DNA of 63,963 nucleotides, counting the filler, from Lenisia limosa (taxonomy: Eukaryota > Protista > Breviatea), in NCBI GenBank assembly GCA_001655205.1. It is 15 parts of 15 records of this genome, joined end to end, with 100 filler letters (N's around TTAATTAATTAA, not from the genome) between each part and the next. Parts side by side here need not be neighbours in the genome. Positions count along the whole stretch, not along the records: positions 19,424 to 24,483 come from LPNZ01005152.1; 14 more parts are not named here. One strand, 5' to 3'. Position numbers and translations under genes: made by a program. Positions 15,498 through 24,484 of the stretch are shown here, piece by piece (positions within the stretch are counted from its first letter, which is position 1; each line of letters starts with the position of its first letter). The notes beneath the pieces were generated by a model. It made no database searches, was not told where the DNA came from, and worked only from the letters and a program-made list of their open reading frames with translations.

Positions 15498-16030
15498 CTG
15501 AAGGAAATTTGGATGAATAATGGCGTAAAGGTAAATGTAAATATGCAATATTTATGAACAAAACAAAACCCAGAAACGAACCAATCCCCCTTTTTAATAC
15601 TTATCCCCTTTCTATTTACACATAACAATTTGAGAAACACACTAGGGTTAATTAAAAACAACAAAACAAACAATACCCAGGCCAATCGCTTCTGCATTTA
15701 TGAAACAAAAAACACTGTTCAAACACACAAAGGTTGAAAAAAGAAAGCCCACACACAAAGGTTGAAAAAAGAAAGCCCACACNNNNNNNNNNNNNNNNNN
15801 NNNNNNNNNNNNNNNNNNNNNNNNNNTTAATTAATTAANNNNNNNNNNNNNNNNNNNNNNNNNNNNNNNNNNNNNNNNNNNNTTTTCCTGTCCCTCTCTG
15901 TATGTTTATTTAAATAGTATCATATGATATCATATATTATACTATGTAATGTTACACACCACCTCCGACATTACAAAAAGGTTACTCATAAAGTCCTTGA
16001 CAACCACAAACGTTACTAAAAACTTAGATC

Positions 16031-17214
16031 CGGAGCAATGTCGAAGGCAGAATGCAGCTGCAACCAGGGCTTTGAACAGGCCAGCGCGGAGTGTGTTGAG
16101 TGTCCAGAAGGCGGATACTGTGCTGGCGGGTCAAGCCCTTCTGTTGCTGAAGAGGGTTTTTATTCCCAGGAGGTGGGCAAACCTTCCTTTAATGGCAGTC
16201 CTTCCTTTTATAGCAGTCATAACCTTCCTTTTATGGTAACTTGACCTCCAGAACGGCACGTATGTTTCCTGTCCCTATGGCGGCGCATGCATGAGGGGTG
16301 GCGGATGCTATGACGGATATCACGGCTTCGTATGCGGCGACTGTGAGGACGGCTTCTACCGATTACGCGAAACCTGCATTGCATGCGCGTCGTGGGGCAA
16401 GTTGCTGCTTCCACTCATGGCGGTCATGGCTGCCCTTCTCGTTATGGTAAGTTGCCATTTTAGGCAAGTTTGGTTGACTATCAGGTTATTTTCGCCTTGT
16501 CAGTACGACCAACCGTTTCTTCAAGATGGGCTAGTCTCAGAATTCTGGTTTCCTTCTTGCAGGTTTGTTGCTGTTTTTCTAGAATTATTTTATGGTGTTA
16601 TTGTAACTCCTCTCCAAATCTTCTTTCCTATATGGCATATCCATTAATTTCCTTTCCTTATACGGCGTTACATCTAACCGGACAGGCGTCCGCGTTGTAT
16701 GCGGAGTTCGAGGTTTCCTGGCCGACCGAGGTCAAATCCGTCCTGGATGTATTCGCCATCATGAACTTCAATTTCCAAGTGGGGGGGNNNNNNNNNNNNN
16801 NNNNNNNNNNNNNNNNNNNNNNNNNNNNNNNNNNNNNNNNNNNNNNNNNNNNNNNNNNNNNNNNNNNNNNNNNNNNNNNNNNNNNNNNNNNNNNNNNNNN
16901 NNNNNNNNNNNNNNNNNNNNNNNNNNNNNNNNNNNNNNNNNNNNNNNTCTGTGGGGGATGTGAACTTGCAGGCTTTGGCCAATGAGCAATTATCAGTAAC
17001 AATACAACCTTCTTTTATCCTGTTTTCTTTCTGAAGATATAAACTTTTTATTTGGTGTTGTACTATTTCTGAAATTAAATTGTTGCTAACAATCTTCTTT
17101 CTGGATCGGAGTGAAGCCTTAGTCATAGCTGACAATCACCAGGTATCATCGCCCGAATGCTCATTGGACCGCCAACTTGGCTACAGCTCTATTCTGCTCT
17201 TTGCGGTATGCTGG
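16031..17214 (+). CDS. Cys-rich ectodomain, multi-pass membrane protein, partial
   Basis: Exons ECSCNQGFEQASAECVECPEGGYCAGG, CPYGGACMRGGGCYDGYHGFVCGDCEDGFYRLRETCIAC + TM, LRILVSFLQ, EFEVSWPTEVKSVLDVFAIMNFNFQ, SSPECSL. Confidence 0.8.
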
Positions 17215-18599
17215 GNNNNNNNNNNNNNNNNNNNNNNNNNNNNNNNNNNNNNNNNNNNNTTAATTAATTAANNNNNNNNNNNNNNNNNNNNNNNNNNNNN
17301 NNNNNNNNNNNNNNNGCATCTAGTCCTCTCTCTAATCATCATTGTATTTTTTGTATTGTTTCGTTTCTCTTTTCTTCTTTGATAGAAAAACGTTTTTCTA
17401 TACTTGCAAAAATACGCAAGCAGCAGGAGTGGCACTCTTGCACATGCACCCATCACATTGTACGTTTTCGTCTTTGTAGCCATGTTCCTTTTGGGATTCA
17501 CATTTATGTGCTTCCTTTTACCCAATGGTGCTTATTCGCACCTCCCCCCCCCCCTCCTCNNNNNNNNNNNNNNNNNNNNNNNNNNNNNNNNNNNNNNNNN
17601 NNNNNNNNNNNNNNNNNNNNNNNNNNNNNNNNNNNNNNNNNNNNNNNNNNNNNNNNNNNNNNNNNNNNNNNNNNNNNNNNNNNNNNNNNGGCAAGCAGCG
17701 AATTGGCTACTCGCAAATGCACCCACCACATTGTGCGATTTCGTCTTTGCACTTGCCATGTTCCTTTTCGGATTCACATTTATGTGTTTCCTTTTACCCA
17801 ATGGTGCTTATTAGCACCCCCCCCCCTGGTGACGCCATCCTTCCCTAGCTCTAATCATTGAATTTTTTGTATCCCTAAACTTTACCCCTCATACCTTCAC
17901 CTATTCGATTAACAACAATTAAATATCATCCCTATTACATTATTATGTGGGTGAAACCCGTAAAACGGTTTGCACTCCAAGTGCCCAGATCACTCAGCGC
18001 CACCACAGAAGAGATCACCATCATCCTCCTCACCATTCCCATCACCGTACCCTAGACCACGCCGCCTCCGACCCCGGACACCCGACTTCGACTTTGACAT
18101 CGCCAGGGGGGTCATCTAGGATGTCCGTCGTTCCTGGCATACCTCACCTCCCACCGCCTCACTAACCACCTTTGTCTTCCAGCCTCACCCATAACCACCC
18201 TACCGACTTTACCTTTTCTTTCCCTCATACCTCCACCTATTCGATTTATAACAATTGAATACCATCCCTATTACATTATTATGTGAAAGGTGAAACCCAT
18301 AAAACGGTTTGCACTCTAAATGCCCAGATCACCCGCCGCGTCACCACAGAAGTGATCACCATCCCGCCGCCTCGCTCTAGTCTGTTTACCCACTGCCCAT
18401 CACCGCCGCTCTCCTACGTATCGTTTTTATCTTTGTTTTACTGAATGTTTTTTTCGATAACTACATTTTTTGTCTTATCAATTCACCGCTATACCCCTGG
18501 TACAGCCCGGTATCGTGTAGAGACGACCCAATCACCCCATTATTGGCCCAAACCGGACACAAAACGGCCCTTTTGGTAATGGGATCTACCTCTTCTTAG

Positions 18600-19017
18600 A
18601 ATTTGCGATTTTCTGTGGACTGTTTCTTTGTGTAGTCAACAACTGGATCTCTATGATCCTAGTTTCAATAGAGTCTTTACTGCAAAAAAGCGACATATAA
18701 ACTATACCCTCTCCCCCTCTTCACATCATTGCCCCCCCCTTACGGTTCTCGGTAATGATCTCCACGCCAAAGTTGTCGGCCTTATCATGGACAAAACGCG
18801 AAAAGTGACCCAATGCTTGCAGAATCTTTCAAGTGAAGAGTAGTAAGAAAACAATTTCGGATCAGAAATGAAGGTTTGAGAAGGTAAACGCGAGGGAATT
18901 GCTTTAAAAGAGAACCAACCTGTACTGGAGGGTGGTCATGGAAGGCGGTTGAGAGGTCTTTGAACCGCATTACGATGACACAGCAGTTGTTCTTCGGCGA
19001 GAGCAGCGTTTTACCCT
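18600..19017 (-). CDS. 3' exons of an unidentified protein
   Basis: Exons GKTLLSPKNNCCVIVMRFKDLSTAFHDHPPVQ and ILQALGHFSRFVHDKADNFGVEIITEN with GT-AG boundaries. Confidence 0.5.
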
Positions 19018-19423
19018 GGGAGGGGGAGGGTCATTTTTGTAGAATTGTTGAGTCTGCGTATTTAAGACTTGTAATGTTTCTATATATCGATATGTTATAT
19101 ATGATATGTTAGTTCATTATTTTAAAATATAGCAATGAGAAATAAAAAAAATAAGGTTGTATCTGGCCGATTTTTAGTCAGATCAGGTCTTTGACCGGAG
19201 AAAAAACAAAACGGTGGGTTATGTATGAAATATATATATATAGATATACTATATCGATATAGTATACTATATGATATTATATTATATTATATGTTATAAT
19301 ATTGCTCAATATTACGACATACTNNNNNNNNNNNNNNNNNNNNNNNNNNNNNNNNNNNNNNNNNNNNTTAATTAATTAANNNNNNNNNNNNNNNNNNNNN
19401 NNNNNNNNNNNNNNNNNNNNNNN

Positions 19424-19545
19424 AGTGAGGTAGTTACTCTTTAGTTGCTAACTCTAGGGAACAAAGAAGCCACTTAAAACGGCTTATATGGAATCAACTT
19501 ATGCAAAATTAAAGGCTTGTGCAACGGTTACCGGTGTTGGCTACA
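19424..19545 (-). other. attC-like site E (R'' half; remainder uncertain or truncated)
   Basis: Minus strand TGTAGCCAAC-ACCG; the same AAC-ACCG spacer start as sites A and B. Confidence 0.55.
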
Positions 19546-19599
19546 GTATTTCTAATTCAACAAATTCAAGTAAATTTTATTAATTCATTTAAAAACACT

Positions 19600-19607
19600 T
19601 ATTTTTG
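19600..19607 (+). promoter_or_regulatory. Candidate Bacteroidota sigma70 -7 element (TAnnTTTG)
   Basis: TATTTTTG 21 nt upstream of the ATG at 19629. No clear -33 TTTG seen. Confidence 0.4.
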
Positions 19608-19628
19608 ACTTCGTCGAATTTAAGTTAT

Positions 19629-20149
19629 ATGAAAAAAATCATTCTATTATTAGTAATTATATTATTTGTTTCATGTTCAAGCGATGATTCAAATGGTGAT
19701 TCGTCTCAACATTATGTGAAATTTCAAGATTTATTTGATACATATTGGTTTTACGATGACATAGTATATACTCTTGAGGATGATAGTGTTATTGTAGTAG
19801 AGCGTGAAACTTGCGAATCTGAATCATGGTTTCATATTGGGACAGGAGCACTTTCTGGTGTATATTCTTTTATGGATGATGGAAATGGAGGATGTGAGCC
19901 ATTTGGTGGGACAAGTTTTGTATTTGCTTTCTATGACCAAGATAATGGTTTTTTTGAGGTTCATTTTAATGATTTTATTAATGATACTNNNNNNNNNNNN
20001 NNNNNNNNNNNNNNNNNNNNNNNNNNNNNNNNNNNNNNNNNNNNNNNNNNNNNNTCGCTGATGGAATGCTTTGGGATGAGACAGATCCTGATGAAATATA
20101 TTTGGGCCAGAACGTTATTAGAAAACAGTTTTTCTTTAGAAGGAGATAA
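19629..20149 (+). CDS. Bacteroidota lipoprotein, hypothetical
   Basis: MKKIILLLVIILFVSC|SSDDS lipobox. There is an N gap at 19989-20054; the acidic frame after it (ADGMLWDETDPDEIYLGQ...RRR*) is the more plausible continuation, giving a stop at 20147-20149. Confidence 0.75.
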
Positions 20150-20212
20150 TCTCAGTTCAAAACCTCATATTATCTATAACTGAATCAGTTCATTTTTTTT
20201 TATTTTATTGTA

Positions 20213-20404
20213 GCCCAACGTGTTTGTATATGGCTCGTAGCGTGTAAATTAGCGATAACTATTCGGTTAAGCACGAGCCGAATTTTTTAATTTTCTTATT
20301 ACCTTTTTTTCAATGAGCCAAATTAAAAAATTTGGCGGACTTGCAAATATGCCTTAACTTCGATTAATCAACTTACTAGCTATGAGCTATATACGGTGTT
20401 GAGC
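20213..20404 (-). other. attC-like site A (192 bp)
   Basis: R'' GCTCAAC (fits RYYYAAC) and R' GTTGGGC (fits GTTRRRY). Inner arms GTATATAGCTCATAGC / GCTACGAGCCATATAC pair at 14/16. Confidence 0.75.
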
Positions 20405-20408
20405 AACG

Positions 20409-22934
20409 TTATTTTTTAATTATTTTTCTTGTAACTTGAACGTTGTTGGGATAATTCATTTTTATCAAATAAATTCCTGGTGCCAAGAATTCTAAATTTA
20501 TATTATTTTCTTGATAATCGCTTTTTGAGAATATTTTTTTTCCATCGATGGTATAGATTTCGAAGCTCAAACTGTTTTGTTCTGTTGTGCTGCTCCAATT
20601 CAAGGTATTTGAAAATGGCACCGGATAAAAGGTGAAACCATCCGTATTAGTTTCTTGTTCTACGATTGCTAAAGTTGAGCTATTTAATAAATAATCTATA
20701 CCTCTTTTATCCCAATAACTGGTTACTATATCAGGTTTATTATCATTATTAAGATCTTCTAAAATTATATCTCTATCTAAACTATAATAACCTCGGTTGT
20801 CAACATAAACTTTTGATTGAAAACTAGTGCCATCATTTAAATAATAAAAAATAGTATCTTCTAAATTTTGTCCCGGATGTGAAGAGGATGCACAAATTAA
20901 ATCTTTATAACCGTTATTGTCAATGTCCGTAAAAGTTACTGCTGATACTGTTGTTCCTGAATTATCAATATAACTATTATTCCCAATAAGACTTCCTTGA
21001 TTATTTTTAATTAGTATAGTAACAAAATAGGAAGCCTGATTATCATAACGATCATTATATAGTATTATATCCCCAAAATTATCATTGTCAATATCTTCAA
21101 CATGTATTTTCTTATCTCTATAGGGTACAGTATTCCCGTTACTAGTGGCATCTTCAAATGTAAAATTTGCAGAGCCATCATTTCTCATTATTTTAATGGT
21201 AGAAACAGTACTTGAACTTAAAATGACATCGATATCTCCGTCATTATCAACATCGTTTTGGTCCATGTCAAAAATTCTGTAATATTGTGGTCCTACTGAT
21301 CCAATGTGTAATGGAATGTCAATAATTTGTAAAGCACCAAATGTATTGTTATTTAACCTCTTAATGAAACCTATATGATGTTCAATACTACTAGTAGGAA
21401 TAGAAACCAAAACATCTTTTAAATTATCTCCATCAAAATCAGCATATATAGGATTTCTAAATGACGATGTTGGCGAATATTGAAATGTTTGATCTGTAAA
21501 TGTCTCGTCATTATTATTGGTTAAAATTGAAATATAGTTATAACTAAAGCCTATAATATCTTTGTATCCATCATTATTTATGTCTTCAATTATAATATCG
21601 ATAAAGTTCTGGTAAGTTGTGTTGTTGTTTGATGAAATAATCTTATAAGAACTGAATTCTGTACCATAATTTTCAAACCAAATGATGTCGTTACAGGCAA
21701 CAATAATGTCATTTTTATTGTCGTTGTTTAAATCCGCAATTTTAATCTTATTAGGATTACCATAATAATGATTAATAATGATTTCTTGAAAAACTGTACC
21801 ATTTCCTTCATTTTTAAACAACGATAATTTTCGCTCAATTGAGGATGGATTAGAACTAGATATTATATCTTTGAGACCATCATTATCAATATCCTCAATC
21901 GAAAAAGATTTTGAATTATATAGCGTATTAGAAATAAGATTTGAGCTACTAAAATTTCCATTTCCAAGATTTCTGTACCAGCTCAAGTTGTCATTTGTCC
22001 AAAAGGAAACTATGATATCGTCTTTTCCATCATTATCAATATCCTTAACATCTACTTGATAAGGGTCTTGTATAGAGTTATCTATAATAATGGGATTATC
22101 GTTATCAAAAGAGTTGCCGTTTTGATTCAAGATATATCTAACATTATCTGCGCTATAGTTATTTGCAGTTACAATATCTAAATATCCATCTTCATTGGCA
22201 TCAATGAAATCTAAAGCCGAACCACTATCTGAAGAACCAGTTATATATTCTCTGTTACCGAAAGTATTATTTCCCAAATTTTTTGCCCAATATATTGAAC
22301 CATCAGAATGGCTTGATATGATATCACTTAAACCATCGTTGTCTAAATCAACAGATTTTACTTGTCTTGTATAATAATTACCATCGTATATTGTTAACGG
22401 ATTTTGAAATGTGCCATCATTATTGTTTTCTAAAAGAATTACAGTATCAGTTTGACCTCCTGTTAATAAGTCGATATCTCCATCGTTATCAATATCTATT
22501 GTTTCTATGGATGATGCTCCATTTATAGAGTTTGCAATTAATATTTCAGTCGAAAAATTTCCGCTTCCTAAATTTTCAAACCAAAATATTTTGTCTTCTA
22601 CAGAATCATTTATTACTATTAAATCTAAAAGTCCATCATTGTTCAAATCTGCTGTGGTAATATATTTAGGAATGTCAATTTGGTTTAGAGATATAAAATT
22701 GCTTTGAAAATGCCTAAAGTCACCATTAACGTTTTTATACCACATGATTTTATCATCGTAAGTAGTAATAATTAGGTCTTTCCAGTTGTCATTATCTAAA
22801 TCTGCGATTGCTATGGAATTTATGTCAGATGGATTGTGAATATCATCAATTAGCGTTGTTCTATCTTGGAAACTAATTTGGGAAAAAGTTAAAAAATGAG
22901 AAACTATCAGTAAAAGTGTAATTTTAATTTTCAT
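20409..22934 (-). CDS. T9SS type A sorting domain protein with FG-GAP/VCBS repeats
   Basis: Signal peptide; 14 DxDxDGxxD-type motifs, consistent with two 7-bladed propellers; C-terminal FYPVPFSN...IYTIDGK...LAPGIYLIK...KIIKK CTD signature. Confidence 0.92.
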   Translation of the reverse strand: MKIKITLLLIVSHFLTFSQISFQDRTTLIDDIHNPSDINSIAIADLDNDNWKDLIITTYDDKIMWYKNVNGDFRHFQSNFISLNQIDIPKYITTADLNNDGLLDLIVINDSVEDKIFWFENLGSGNFSTEILIANSINGASSIETIDIDNDGDIDLLTGGQTDTVILLENNNDGTFQNPLTIYDGNYYTRQVKSVDLDNDGLSDIISSHSDGSIYWAKNLGNNTFGNREYITGSSDSGSALDFIDANEDGYLDIVTANNYSADNVRYILNQNGNSFDNDNPIIIDNSIQDPYQVDVKDIDNDGKDDIIVSFWTNDNLSWYRNLGNGNFSSSNLISNTLYNSKSFSIEDIDNDGLKDIISSSNPSSIERKLSLFKNEGNGTVFQEIIINHYYGNPNKIKIADLNNDNKNDIIVACNDIIWFENYGTEFSSYKIISSNNNTTYQNFIDIIIEDINNDGYKDIIGFSYNYISILTNNNDETFTDQTFQYSPTSSFRNPIYADFDGDNLKDVLVSIPTSSIEHHIGFIKRLNNNTFGALQIIDIPLHIGSVGPQYYRIFDMDQNDVDNDGDIDVILSSSTVSTIKIMRNDGSANFTFEDATSNGNTVPYRDKKIHVEDIDNDNFGDIILYNDRYDNQASYFVTILIKNNQGSLIGNNSYIDNSGTTVSAVTFTDIDNNGYKDLICASSSHPGQNLEDTIFYYLNDGTSFQSKVYVDNRGYYSLDRDIILEDLNNDNKPDIVTSYWDKRGIDYLLNSSTLAIVEQETNTDGFTFYPVPFSNTLNWSSTTEQNSLSFEIYTIDGKKIFSKSDYQENNINLEFLAPGIYLIKMNYPNNVQVTRKIIKK

Positions 22935-22953
22935 ATTTTTTTGGTTTAATGTT

Positions 22954-23085
22954 GTACAACGTGTTTGTGTATGATTTCGTTGCGTGTTTCAGCAACTAAA
23001 TTAGCAAATACAAACCGAATAGAAAATCCGCGAGGATTTTCGTAAGTAGGCAAGTACTAGCAATGAATTATACACGGTGTTACCC
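22954..23085 (-). other. attC-like site B (132 bp)
   Basis: R'' GGGTAAC-ACCGTGTATAATTCATTGC ... GCAACGAAATCATACAC-AAACAC-GTTGTAC R'; central GAAAATCC-N4-GGATTTTC stem. Confidence 0.75.
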
Positions 23086-23092
23086 AACGTTT

Positions 23093-23614
23093 TTAATTCC
23101 AATAATTTATTAAATCATCAATTTCAAAGTTGCTTTCTGGAATGTAAATATTATCCCAATATAAGGTTCCGTTGATTTTCACAAAAACTCTGTAATAGCC
23201 AGAAGATAAGTTCTCTAAATTTAGCACTATATTTGTTGAGTTCAAGTCAATAGCTTCTATTTCGGCATTCAATTCGATTTCAGATTCAGCGTACAAGTCC
23301 GAGTTTAAAATTGTACTAAAGTCCGTTTGTTGATATATTTTTTCTGCATTAGCACTAGTAATCCAGACATCAGAAATATTTTCAGGTGCTGATAAACTTA
23401 ATGCTCCAGCAGGTGGGTTTGGATAAGCAATAAATTGATTATTGGTAAGAACATTTGGGTTACCTAATTTTATAGGTGCAGAAAATTCCGAGTTTCTTAT
23501 ATTAATTCCAGTTACTAATTCAATATTAGTTTCAGATGTAGAATTGTTGTTTTCATCGTCGTTGCTACAGCTAATCAATATTAAAAGAGCTAAAATAATT
23601 GTCATTCTTTTCAT
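23093..23614 (-). CDS. Bacteroidota lipoprotein with CTD-like Ig motifs
   Basis: MKRMTIILALLILISC|SNDD lipobox; AYPNPP...LNLENLSSGYYRVFVK. It is a separate gene from the upstream ORF. Confidence 0.85.
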   Translation of the reverse strand: MKRMTIILALLILISCSNDDENNNSTSETNIELVTGINIRNSEFSAPIKLGNPNVLTNNQFIAYPNPPAGALSLSAPENISDVWITSANAEKIYQQTDFSTILNSDLYAESEIELNAEIEAIDLNSTNIVLNLENLSSGYYRVFVKINGTLYWDNIYIPESNFEIDDLINYWN

Positions 23615-23630
23615 TCGTATTTTTTTTAAT

Positions 23631-23740
23631 GTTGGGTAACGGTCTCGGCTATGANNNNNNNNNNNNNNNNNNNNNNNNNNNNNNNNNNNNNNNNNNNNNN
23701 NNNNNNNNNNNNNNNNNNNNNNNNNNNNNNNNNNNNNNNN
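23631..23740 (-). other. attC-like site C (R' half visible, remainder in N gap)
   Basis: Minus strand TCATAGCCGAGACC-GTTACCCAAC, 16 nt before the ATG at 23614. Confidence 0.6.
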
Positions 23741-24421
23741 TGATTCCATTTCGTGTAATTTTTCGGGCAGTGTTTCTCTTAATTCTTTGGACACTTTCGA
23801 CATTTCATCAGAGTAATGTTTAAAATATTCCGCTGAAATTTGTCCGCTTTCTATTCTTGCTTTACTGTATCCAAATTCCCAACCTTTATCCCAATATTCT
23901 TTAAACAGTTCATCAATGAATTCACAAAACTTTACAGAAAAAAACAGTTTATTGGGAATGTAATAGTTCTTAAAATCATCAATTGCTTTATTAACTCTCG
24001 TAGTTCTTTCTTGACTTTCTTTTTCAGCATCTTCGATAATCGGTTGAAGTGTAGCTGTCCAATTCATCATTGCAGAATGTAACTCTTGAAGTTTTCTATA
24101 TAATTCAAGAATTACTTTAGCTCTTTCTTGATGTAAGTAACCGTACTCAATTTGATGATTAATATTGTTTTTAGCCAATTCAGATTTAATTGGTTCAATT
24201 TTCAAGGCAAGCTCTTCATTCAGTTTGCTTTTGTAAGACTCAAGTTTCTCGTTAAAATCTTTTTTTACCTTTTCTTCTAATTCCGTTAGTTGTTCTCTTG
24301 TCGAAAGTTTGGCAACTTCATTTCCCAAAGATTTAAGCCAAGACTTGTAAAAAATGAAGTAAGAGGCAATTAAAAATAGTGCAACTTTTATTAATAATTC
24401 AATCCAATTTATTTCGTTCAT
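23741..24421 (-). CDS. Hypothetical bacterial protein: N-terminal TM helix, coiled coil and helical domain; stop lies in the gap
   Basis: MNEINWIELLIKVALFLIASYFIFYKSWL followed by a Lys/Glu-rich segment; open to the N gap at 23740. Confidence 0.8.
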
Positions 24422-24438
24422 TCGTTGTCGTATTTAAT

Positions 24439-24484
24439 TGTGCCTAACTCGTTATATAATAACAAATATAATCTTTTAAGGGAN
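24439..24484 (-). other. attC-like site D (R' half, truncated by contig end)
   Basis: Minus strand TATATAACGA-GTTAGGC (canonical GTTRRRY), 20 nt before the ATG at 24421. Confidence 0.6.

Follow-up and report, generated by a model that had tools for sequence, protein, structure and literature searches.

What kind of element sets four unrelated open reading frames (ORFs) side by side on one short contig, with an imperfect palindrome in constant orientation between each and the next? The contig, LPNZ01005152.1 of the Lenisia limosa assembly GCA_001655205.1, occupies positions 19,424 to 24,483 of a 63,963-nt stretch of joined records that we call the window, and coordinates given without a locus name count along the window. 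An earlier note, made from the sequence alone, had read this piece as part of a sedentary integron-like cassette array in a member of the Bacteroidota, possibly served by a tyrosine recombinase encoded elsewhere. Here we report the architecture of the array, a covarying and asymmetric stem in its sites, the linkage of recombinase, attI and array in related loci, and cassette-level variation between strains and samples. We conclude that the piece is very probably an internal stretch of a chromosomal cassette array, part of an integron-like site-specific recombination system of the Flavobacteriaceae.

All the features that the earlier note had described, four ORFs between five co-oriented sites with AAC and GTT boxes, are present in the piece (Table 1). 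The ORFs are mutually unrelated, and the sites between them are imperfect palindromes of ~125-190 nt with AAC and GTT at their bounds, corresponding to families D3 and D8 of our repeat search. When the minus strand is read, a box ending in AAC lies a few bases past each upstream stop codon and a box starting with GTT stands ~20 nt ahead of the ATG that follows. The spacings given earlier proved correct: the ATGs of ORF2, ORF3 and ORF4 are 19-20 nt past the GTT 7-mer box, and the stop codons of ORF3 and ORF2 precede the 7-mer AAC box by 7 and 4 nt, respectively. The two direct-repeat spacings, 2741 and 680 nt, are the lengths of the ORF2 and ORF3 cassettes, the former running from the GTT of site B (22960) down to 20220, the base preceding the GTT of site A (20219-20217). 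ORF2 combines FG-GAP repeats (FG-GAP_3, E 4e-78) with a C-terminal sorting domain of the type IX secretion system (T9SS; Por_Secre_tail, E 7e-9), and because of this sorting domain the contig is assigned to Bacteroidota.

A longer view of the same array is given by L001, a 12,952-bp metagenome contig from ENA that encodes the exact ORF2 protein. The three sequenced blocks of the piece match it at 100% identity, colinearly and on a single strand. L001 holds 11 sites and 10 cassettes, with 9 of the 10 ORFs co-oriented, and terminates within the array.

The sites recur widely within one bacterial family. A 17-nt motif taken from sites A and B was scanned against one-genome-per-species contigs (596 Gb, in which we calculate that ~140 matches to a 17-mer would be expected by chance) and marked at least 120 loci, nearly all of them in Flavobacteriaceae and spread over at least 30 named genera. 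Some ten matches in non-Bacteroidota genomes lacked any full site, as was the case for 9 of the 120 genome loci, and were discarded. Iterated nhmmer profiles of both arms were then used to collect sites. Among the loci listed, to which the counts in this paragraph refer, there are at least 429 sites overall, at least 420 of them in 111 genome loci; 90 loci have at least two sites and 52 at least four, and within every one of the 111 genome loci all listed copies are co-oriented. The distance from AAC to GTT is 121-127 nt in 303 of 329 complete sites, and a minor class resembling site A measures ~185-190 nt. The recurrence of sites A and B between variable ORFs in Flavobacteriia, which had been put forward as a check, was thus found at ~110 Flavobacteriaceae loci. 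Over 245 cassettes, the longest ORF is co-oriented with the array in 97%, and the medians are 23 nt from GTT to ATG, 12 nt from stop codon to AAC and 863 nt for the whole cassette.

The boxes that flank each gene reveal where cassettes are joined. In L001, the sequence just past any GTT is the reverse complement of that which precedes the AAC of the following site, at the far end of the same gene. Boxes belonging to one cassette (the GTT of site i-1 against the AAC of site i) are 88-92% complementary at positions +1 to +6 and 63% at +7, as against 31-58% for the two boxes of the same site (31-35% at +2 to +6). Pairs from one cassette average 6.0 matches of 8, compared with 2.6 for random pairs, and differ from same-site pairs with a Mann-Whitney p of 5e-72. 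This is the complementarity beside GTT and AAC that belongs to the cassette and attC architecture proposed earlier, and therefore a gene plus its site is the unit cut at GTT, where the crossover is located. In integrons, recombination at GTT makes the sites of an array hybrids, and only the excised circle regains a fully paired outer box. In the piece itself, the starting 10 nt of the ORF3 cassette, GTTACCCAAC, are the exact reverse complement of its ending 10 nt, GTTGGGTAAC; the ORF4 cassette boxes GTTAGGCACA and TGTGCCTAAC are exact complements; and the AAC-side box of S0 (19536-19545) is complementary, but for a single indel, to that following the GTT of site A. Pairing between the N7 boxes of one and the same site was considered and rejected, since ~40% of cells pair in the 120-site alignment described below, as expected for hybrids.

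We aligned 120 standard sites from 99 loci (alignment A1) and built from them a covariance model, R1. The consensus runs from N7-AAC through a short spacer, a 16-nt left arm, a variable middle with a small apical hairpin, the right arm and a longer spacer to GTT-N7, the spacer being asymmetric (2 versus 5 nt). RNAalifold predicts a long-range stem of 13 pairs (the L stem), 96.5% paired and with compensatory changes at 10 of them; one stem position, for example, is GC in 65 sites, AU in 41 and CG in 9. A competing local fold derived from minimum-energy structures was set aside, being only 58-66% paired over the 120 sites, with few compensatory changes. The gene-sense strand has three fixed A·C mismatches, present in 115-118 of the 120 sites, that turn into T·G wobbles on the complementary strand, and with DNA parameters the bottom strand is the more stable one in 98% of 303 sites (-17.8 versus -15.0 kcal/mol). 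The stem arms are equal in length in most sites, the fixed A·C mismatches replacing bulges, and a bulged G occurs in 16 of the 120. The site is thus conserved as an asymmetric structure, a hallmark of attC, with fixed mismatches and not conserved bulged bases. On the loop side of the right arm, most sites also have a motif near TTAGGTGCTTAA (A1 columns 106-115; about 22990-23005 on the minus strand of the window), conserved in sequence and unpaired, and this TTAGGTGCTTAA-like motif could be a candidate protein-binding site.

The covariance model recovers site A with 67.4 bits (E 5.7e-15) and site B with 151 bits (E 2.2e-36); site C, complete in L001 (8219-8363), scores 125 bits (E 8e-30), and S0 was not found by the model at E<=1. 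The claim that both complete sites form hairpins holds in part. Site A folds as a single sequence into one long imperfect hairpin (-26.4 kcal/mol, z -2.6), while the stem of site B is supported by covariation over the 120 sites instead of by its own fold. Rfam's Flavo-1 model, which the earlier note had proposed for a search and which describes an RNA motif known as a repeated structured element mainly from Flavobacteria, does not match: a scan of both strands of the piece at E<=10 returned three chance-level matches only, and Flavo-1 was not among them.

Clustering of the ORFs at array flanks yielded a single recurrent family, a tyrosine recombinase of ~375 aa; at seven loci its gene lies upstream of the array's first site and runs in the direction of the cassettes. 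Together with five loci ascertained from the protein, the recombinase gene is directly upstream and co-oriented in 12 loci, seven of them ascertained from the sites. The five protein-ascertained loci have co-oriented small ORFs downstream and 4-9 R1 matches on the same strand, and the sole upstream R1 match among them is weak and partial (L124, E 0.019). An earlier expectation that arrays adjoin a tyrosine recombinase therefore holds in these related loci, where an attI-like site accompanies the gene; the enzyme is XerA-like and not a canonical IntI. It contains the Phage_int_SAM_4 and Phage_integrase domains, and its best NCBIfam model is NF040815 (XerA-like), with 241.5, 229.7 and 218 bits against a cutoff of 220, which two of three proteins pass. 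The IntI models stay below their cutoffs: TIGR02249 at 195-211 bits (cutoff 265, in two separate stretches) and NF011946 at 129-148 bits (cutoff 435). Among known structures, PDB 4a8e matches with E 1e-44 and 5hxy is the top Foldseek match. Members of the family are 73-97% identical among Cellulophaga, Maribacter, Arenibacter, Croceitalea, Lacinutrix and Psychroserpens, and carry the annotation XerD or 'site-specific tyrosine recombinase/integron integrase'.

What defines IntI is an additional domain, the I2 alpha-helix around patch III, which the recombinase lacks. Alignment with VchIntIA (2a3v) breaks at exactly this domain, where 22 query residues stand opposite 64 of IntI; the catalytic residues K265 and H329 have 64 aa between them, and the predicted model is without an extra element there. 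The six catalytic residues, R240, K265, H329, R332, H355 and Y364, are invariant in the family. The AlphaFold model has a Xer-like body preceded by an extra N-terminal domain of ~110 aa with a beta-beta-alpha-beta-beta-alpha order, for which nothing was found in Pfam. Foldseek searches of this domain gave weak matches only in the PDB (E 0.1-0.5, to the XPB damage-recognition domain, HARP and eIF1-like folds) and, in the AlphaFold database, a HARP-domain protein (E 1.4e-3) and the N-termini of other recombinases. On the predicted model, then, the domain may weakly resemble the XPB damage-recognition and HARP folds, which we offer as a lead only.

A short inverted repeat followed by GTT stands within ~50-90 nt past the recombinase stop codon in all 12 platform loci inspected. 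A further example of a genome with a platform is the complete one of Lacinutrix sp. Bg11-31 (CP025118.1), in the region of 174.8-195.9 kb. Nine loci were parsed with a regular expression, and L076, L104 and L105 were read by eye; in eight of the nine, the first cassette ends, 416-1625 nt downstream, in an exact 10-mer complement of this GTT and its N7. We identify the repeat and its GTT as attI because the 10-mer complement closes the first cassette. In every platform locus with flank sequence, a gene ~70 nt upstream of the recombinase gene, and divergent from it, encodes a ~123-aa protein that has a CxxC...CxxC zinc ribbon at its N-terminus. The protein is 48-64% identical between genera, matches only the YacG and treble-clef families of Pfam, weakly, and is a candidate accessory factor or regulator.

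Cassette content varies where the platform does not. Two Maribacter assemblies (L127 and L128) encode an identical recombinase protein, and their upstream genes agree in size, Pfam family and order; the downstream genes are wholly different, and the sequences part exactly after the GTT of attI. Five cassettes are common to different species or genera at 91-100% identity, with homology ending at the cassette borders. Turning to the piece's own array, contigs from four metagenomes were mapped on 20055-23654. Depth over site B was 845-1680, compared with 6-26 on the flanking genes, or 50-250 times their depth. Two of the metagenomes (X1 and X2) contain the ORF2 cassette and have depth 0 on the ORF3 cassette, and one X1 contig has a 1112-nt insertion exactly at AACG 20217-20220, which on the cassette strand is site A's GTT. 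The variable gene content anticipated in the earlier note is therefore seen both between near-identical platforms and between metagenomes holding the ORF2 cassette.

Three other explanations deserve weight. The arrays might be canonical integron arrays, either clusters of attC sites lacking integron-integrases (CALIN) or sedentary chromosomal ones, served by a true IntI elsewhere, with the adjoining Xer-like recombinase incidental. Such an origin would suit the architecture and the GTT/AAC boxes, which fit classical attC logic, as well as the substantial partial score on TIGR02249 (195-211 bits); yet among 123 array loci no IntI-type protein was found, the remaining tyrosine recombinases (those of L072 and L011) are generic, with 33-52 bits on that model, and the gene that does recur is the Xer-like one, followed by an attI whose GTT and N7 pair with the first cassette's end in eight of nine loci. 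IntegronFinder surveys report neither CALIN nor complete integrons in Flavobacteriia (PMC9024848). We consider this explanation very unlikely. Smaller still, to the point of being almost negligible, is the probability that the sites are a non-mobile intergenic repeat accumulated in a variable region, such as a repetitive extragenic palindrome or bacterial interspersed mosaic element (REP/BIME), a miniature inverted-repeat transposable element (MITE), a terminator or a structured RNA like Flavo-1. The sites are indeed high-copy, intergenic, hairpin-forming and directly past stop codons, as such repeats are, but no Rfam family, Flavo-1 included, matches them at E<=10, their orientation is uniform within arrays, and box complementarity spanning genes, attI and a recombinase at the array head and indel polymorphism exact to the GTT are foreign to REPs, MITEs and terminators. 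In our judgement, the N7 complementarity and the attI evidence refute repeats of this kind.

The main rival is recombination of duplex DNA by a Xer-type dimer acting on palindromic arms, as at dif, pdif or the sites of integrative mobile elements exploiting Xer (IMEX), the hairpin potential being a by-product. In its favour, the recombinase is Xer-like and without the I2 helix, and the short inverted repeat of attI could be a conventional two-arm core site. The sites of the arrays themselves point the other way. Their stem covaries among sites of the same genomes (GC/AU/CG), which is expected for base pairing and not for half-sites read by a protein; a distance of 90-150 nt lies between their arms; one of the two strands has the advantage in 98% of sites owing to the fixed A·C mismatches; and the cassette-specific N7 boxes are complementary without being conserved. 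Moreover, pdif sites are 28 bp long and alternate in orientation, whereas here all are co-oriented. We therefore hold duplex recombination to be unlikely, though the least unlikely of the three.

Several observations weigh against the reading of the piece as part of an integron-like system. Recombinase, attI and array end are all missing from both the piece and L001, and what ties the piece to the platform is site homology only. In many arrays with 3-6 kb of upstream flank, no recombinase was found in the 8-kb block, and some arrays may be orphan or interrupted. Site B gives no end-to-end hairpin as a single-sequence minimum-energy fold on either strand, and conserved extrahelical bases are absent from the 120-site alignment, which has mismatches only. 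Neither a circular cassette nor a direct excision joint was seen in the metagenome contigs, the search covering assembled contigs only. Finally, single-strand recombination is not assured, because the recombinase lacks the I2 helix.

With these points in the balance, the integron-like reading suggests the following course of events. A cassette usually consists of one promoterless ORF and an attC-like site of ~124 nt, sometimes ~185-190 nt. In this site the outer box is AAC...GTT, the unpaired spacer is asymmetric, the inner stem of 16 bp has fixed mismatches, and the tip is variable. Cutting and joining would take place at the invariant CGTT; the excised circle would bear a site whose outer 10 or more base pairs are perfectly paired, each array site being a hybrid of two neighbouring cassettes. 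In related genomes the platform comprises the ~375-aa recombinase gene, an attI-like repeat ending in GTT after its stop codon, and the divergent gene for the ~123-aa zinc-ribbon protein. The XerA-like recombinase probably catalyses the reaction, its substrate would be the folded bottom strand, as in integrons, and cassettes may be expressed by read-through from the platform. Judged by its sequences, the system would be functionally an integron outside the IntI family. The term 'integron-like' is correct for it, and 'integron' in the strict IntI sense is not, the recombinase being XerA-like and without the IntI-specific domain.

The features of the piece and of the platform neighbourhoods are collected in Table 1.

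Table 1. Sites and genes of the piece (window coordinates) and selected genes of related loci (locus name, then coordinates).
Feature	Position	Strand	Description
S0	19439-19545	-	Divergent short site closing the reverse-oriented ORF1 cassette; only the AAC end is supported; read from sequence
Site A	20206-20411	-	Long attC-like variant, ~184 nt from AAC to GTT; GTT 20219-20217, AAC 20400-20398
Site B	22947-23092	-	Standard 124-nt attC-like site; GTT 22960-22958, AAC 23081-23079
Site C	23627 into gap (23627..23740)	-	Only the GTT end sequenced (23640-23638); remainder in assembly gap
Site D	24436-24483	-	Last 48 nt of a 205-nt site (L001 7262-7466); GTT 24448-24446
ORF1	19629..20149	+	Lipoprotein; 171 aa after gap closure
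ORF2	22934..20409	-	841 aa; FG-GAP repeats and T9SS C-terminal sorting domain
ORF3	23614..23093	-	173 aa, small secreted protein; signal-peptide-like N-terminus; weak T9SS tail match
ORF4	24421 into second gap (23741..24421)	-	227 aa visible; 246 aa in L001
Zinc-ribbon gene	L127:9562-9930, L124:9566-9934, L129:9562-9936, L119:687-1052; also L099	- (the four with coordinates)	~123-aa protein
CTnDOT-type integrase	L124:6691-7932, L129:7935-9173; also L125, L130		412-413 aa
First cassettes, defence-like or toxin-antitoxin-like	L126:11150-13664, L128:12596-15736, L129:11198-12343		

ORF1 is the sole gene in the piece that runs against the direction of the array. Its sequence suggests a promoter of its own, with a putative Bacteroidetes-type -7 box (TAnnTTTG, 19600-19607), and the hairpin and T-run at about 20174-20203 may act as a terminator. 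The gap at 19989-20054 is given as 66 N in the piece and is truly 61 nt long in L001; ORF1 appears frameshifted because this gap length is wrong, and is intact. ORF4 has an N-terminal membrane helix and no match in Pfam. The second gap, 23655-23740 (86 N, true length 174 nt in L001), covers the 3'-terminal part of ORF4 and the greater part of site C. It thus falls in a site, which fits repeats that break short-read assemblies, and many of the loci fetched are short contigs with a site at the end.

Arrays elsewhere in the family differ in length, site class and interruptions. Longer sites of ~185-210 nt occur at L127:13813-14022, 15548-15758, 16248-16457 and 18130-18339, and at 20206-20411 of the window; those of Maribacter have a different yet self-complementary inner stem and coexist with the 124-nt class in one array. 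In Lacinutrix mariniflava NZ_LIQG01000020.1, blocks of sites at 32-40 kb (L110) and 56-64 kb (L046) lie 24 kb apart, which suggests one array-bearing region of at least 30 kb, although no site was detected in the first ~5 kb of the second block. From the read depth and this one region, a genome could possibly hold dozens of cassettes or more. A Croceitalea array is interrupted by an IS110-family transposase gene (L129:15966-16934) and by an IS21-type pair (rve and IstB, 18678-20984).

The neighbourhoods of the platforms show further mobile and defence-related genes. In two genera, a CTnDOT-type integrase (Arm-DNA-bind_5, Phage_int_SAM_5, Phage_integrase) is encoded 1-3 kb upstream, and the platform may lie beside, or be the target of, another mobile element. 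Near-identical recombinases occur on three contigs that are all named Maribacter aquivivus (P0048, P0052 and P0063), and a genome may have several platforms, these three coming from one or several assemblies. The first cassettes past the platform include defence-like or toxin-antitoxin-like genes (AAA_21 with DUF4435, Gp49 with HTH_3, HTH_3 with DUF2326 and MC8, and DUF3800). Such cassettes are reported for Vibrio chromosomal integrons, a parallel to those seen here. A 904-nt cassette is 100% identical between Winogradskyella ursingii (L008, 2904-3807) and Psychroflexus aestuariivivens (L116, 1560-2463; oriented coordinates in both), and the site preceding it is only ~75% identical; this points to either very recent transfer or cross-contamination of assemblies.

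The closest counterparts are the sedentary chromosomal integrons, exemplified by the Vibrio cholerae superintegron with its attC sites (VCR, Vibrio cholerae repeats) and VchIntIA. In both, a platform of recombinase gene and attI heads a long array whose cassettes are compact, co-oriented and for the most part promoterless, with attC sites that are highly similar within a lineage. Core boxes AAC and GTT, the crossover at GTT, hybrid array sites and an imperfect hairpin with unpaired spacer and strand asymmetry are shared as well, as are occasional reverse cassettes with their own promoter and a gene content of unknown function or of toxin-antitoxin-like and defence-like type. The recombinase differs: here it is without the I2 helix, falls below the TIGR02249 and NF011946 cutoffs, passes NF040815 in two of three proteins and has an additional, conserved domain at its N-terminus. 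Its gene also runs in the same direction as the cassettes, whereas that of sedentary integrons is divergent from them. The outer box is N7+AAC with N7 almost free, in contrast to RYYYAAC; fixed mismatches replace the conserved extrahelical bases; upstream there is a conserved zinc-ribbon gene; and the host clade, the Flavobacteriaceae, has been reported to be without integrons.

The XerA-type recombinases (4a8e, 5hxy, NF040815) are the best matches in sequence and structure, with the same length and catalytic core and no insertion. XerA, however, resolves chromosome dimers at a single dif site, whereas the family described here heads cassette arrays beside attI, has the ~110-aa N-terminal extension and maybe exists in several near-identical versions per species. 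The pdif (Xer) modules of Acinetobacter plasmids and the IMEX elements are likewise discrete gene modules bounded by sites for Xer-family recombinases. Their XerC/XerD sites are duplex, 28 bp long and of alternating orientation, and they are not known to have a dedicated platform; the sites of the present arrays, in contrast, are of hairpin type, ~124 nt long and all co-oriented, with a dedicated recombinase and attI.

The IntegronFinder 2.0 report (PMC9024848) lists, for Bacteroidetes, a single complete integron, from Salinibacter, and otherwise In0 elements only. Reviews place Bacteroidota among the integron-bearing phyla and leave the Flavobacteriaceae unmentioned, and we found no description of a cassette system of this family in the open full-text literature, subscription journals lying outside that coverage. 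We lean, with little more than even confidence, towards the view that the Flavobacteriaceae have an integron lineage of their own, spanning at least 30 genera, whose recombinase arose from the Xer/XerA grade, or still stands at it, without the I2 helix. Folded attC would then be recognised differently, the fixed mismatches being read by the N-terminal domain, perhaps together with the zinc-ribbon partner, and standard tools such as IntegronFinder and hidden Markov models of IntI would miss the system. If this is true, single-strand cassette recombination either arose twice or predates the IntI-specific domain. A published account sees the I2 helix as the innovation through which integron integrases passed from double-stranded to single-stranded substrates (PMC7790495). 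A Xer-type enzyme that handles folded DNA without the IntI insertion would be a natural experiment, one that bears on published work on the origin of integron integrases.

IntI with its I2 helix is held to be the defining feature of integrons, and Flavobacteriia are held to be essentially without them; a functional analogue there would redraw the range of cassette gene capture. There is a practical side as well: the 124-nt repeats break assemblies of Flavobacteriaceae genomes, and the covariance model R1 could be used to annotate the sites. The host family is among the ocean's main polysaccharide degraders. A large hidden pool of cassettes would open up in these bacteria, with T9SS-secreted repeat proteins and lipoproteins in the array studied here and toxin-antitoxin-like and defence-like genes near the platforms.

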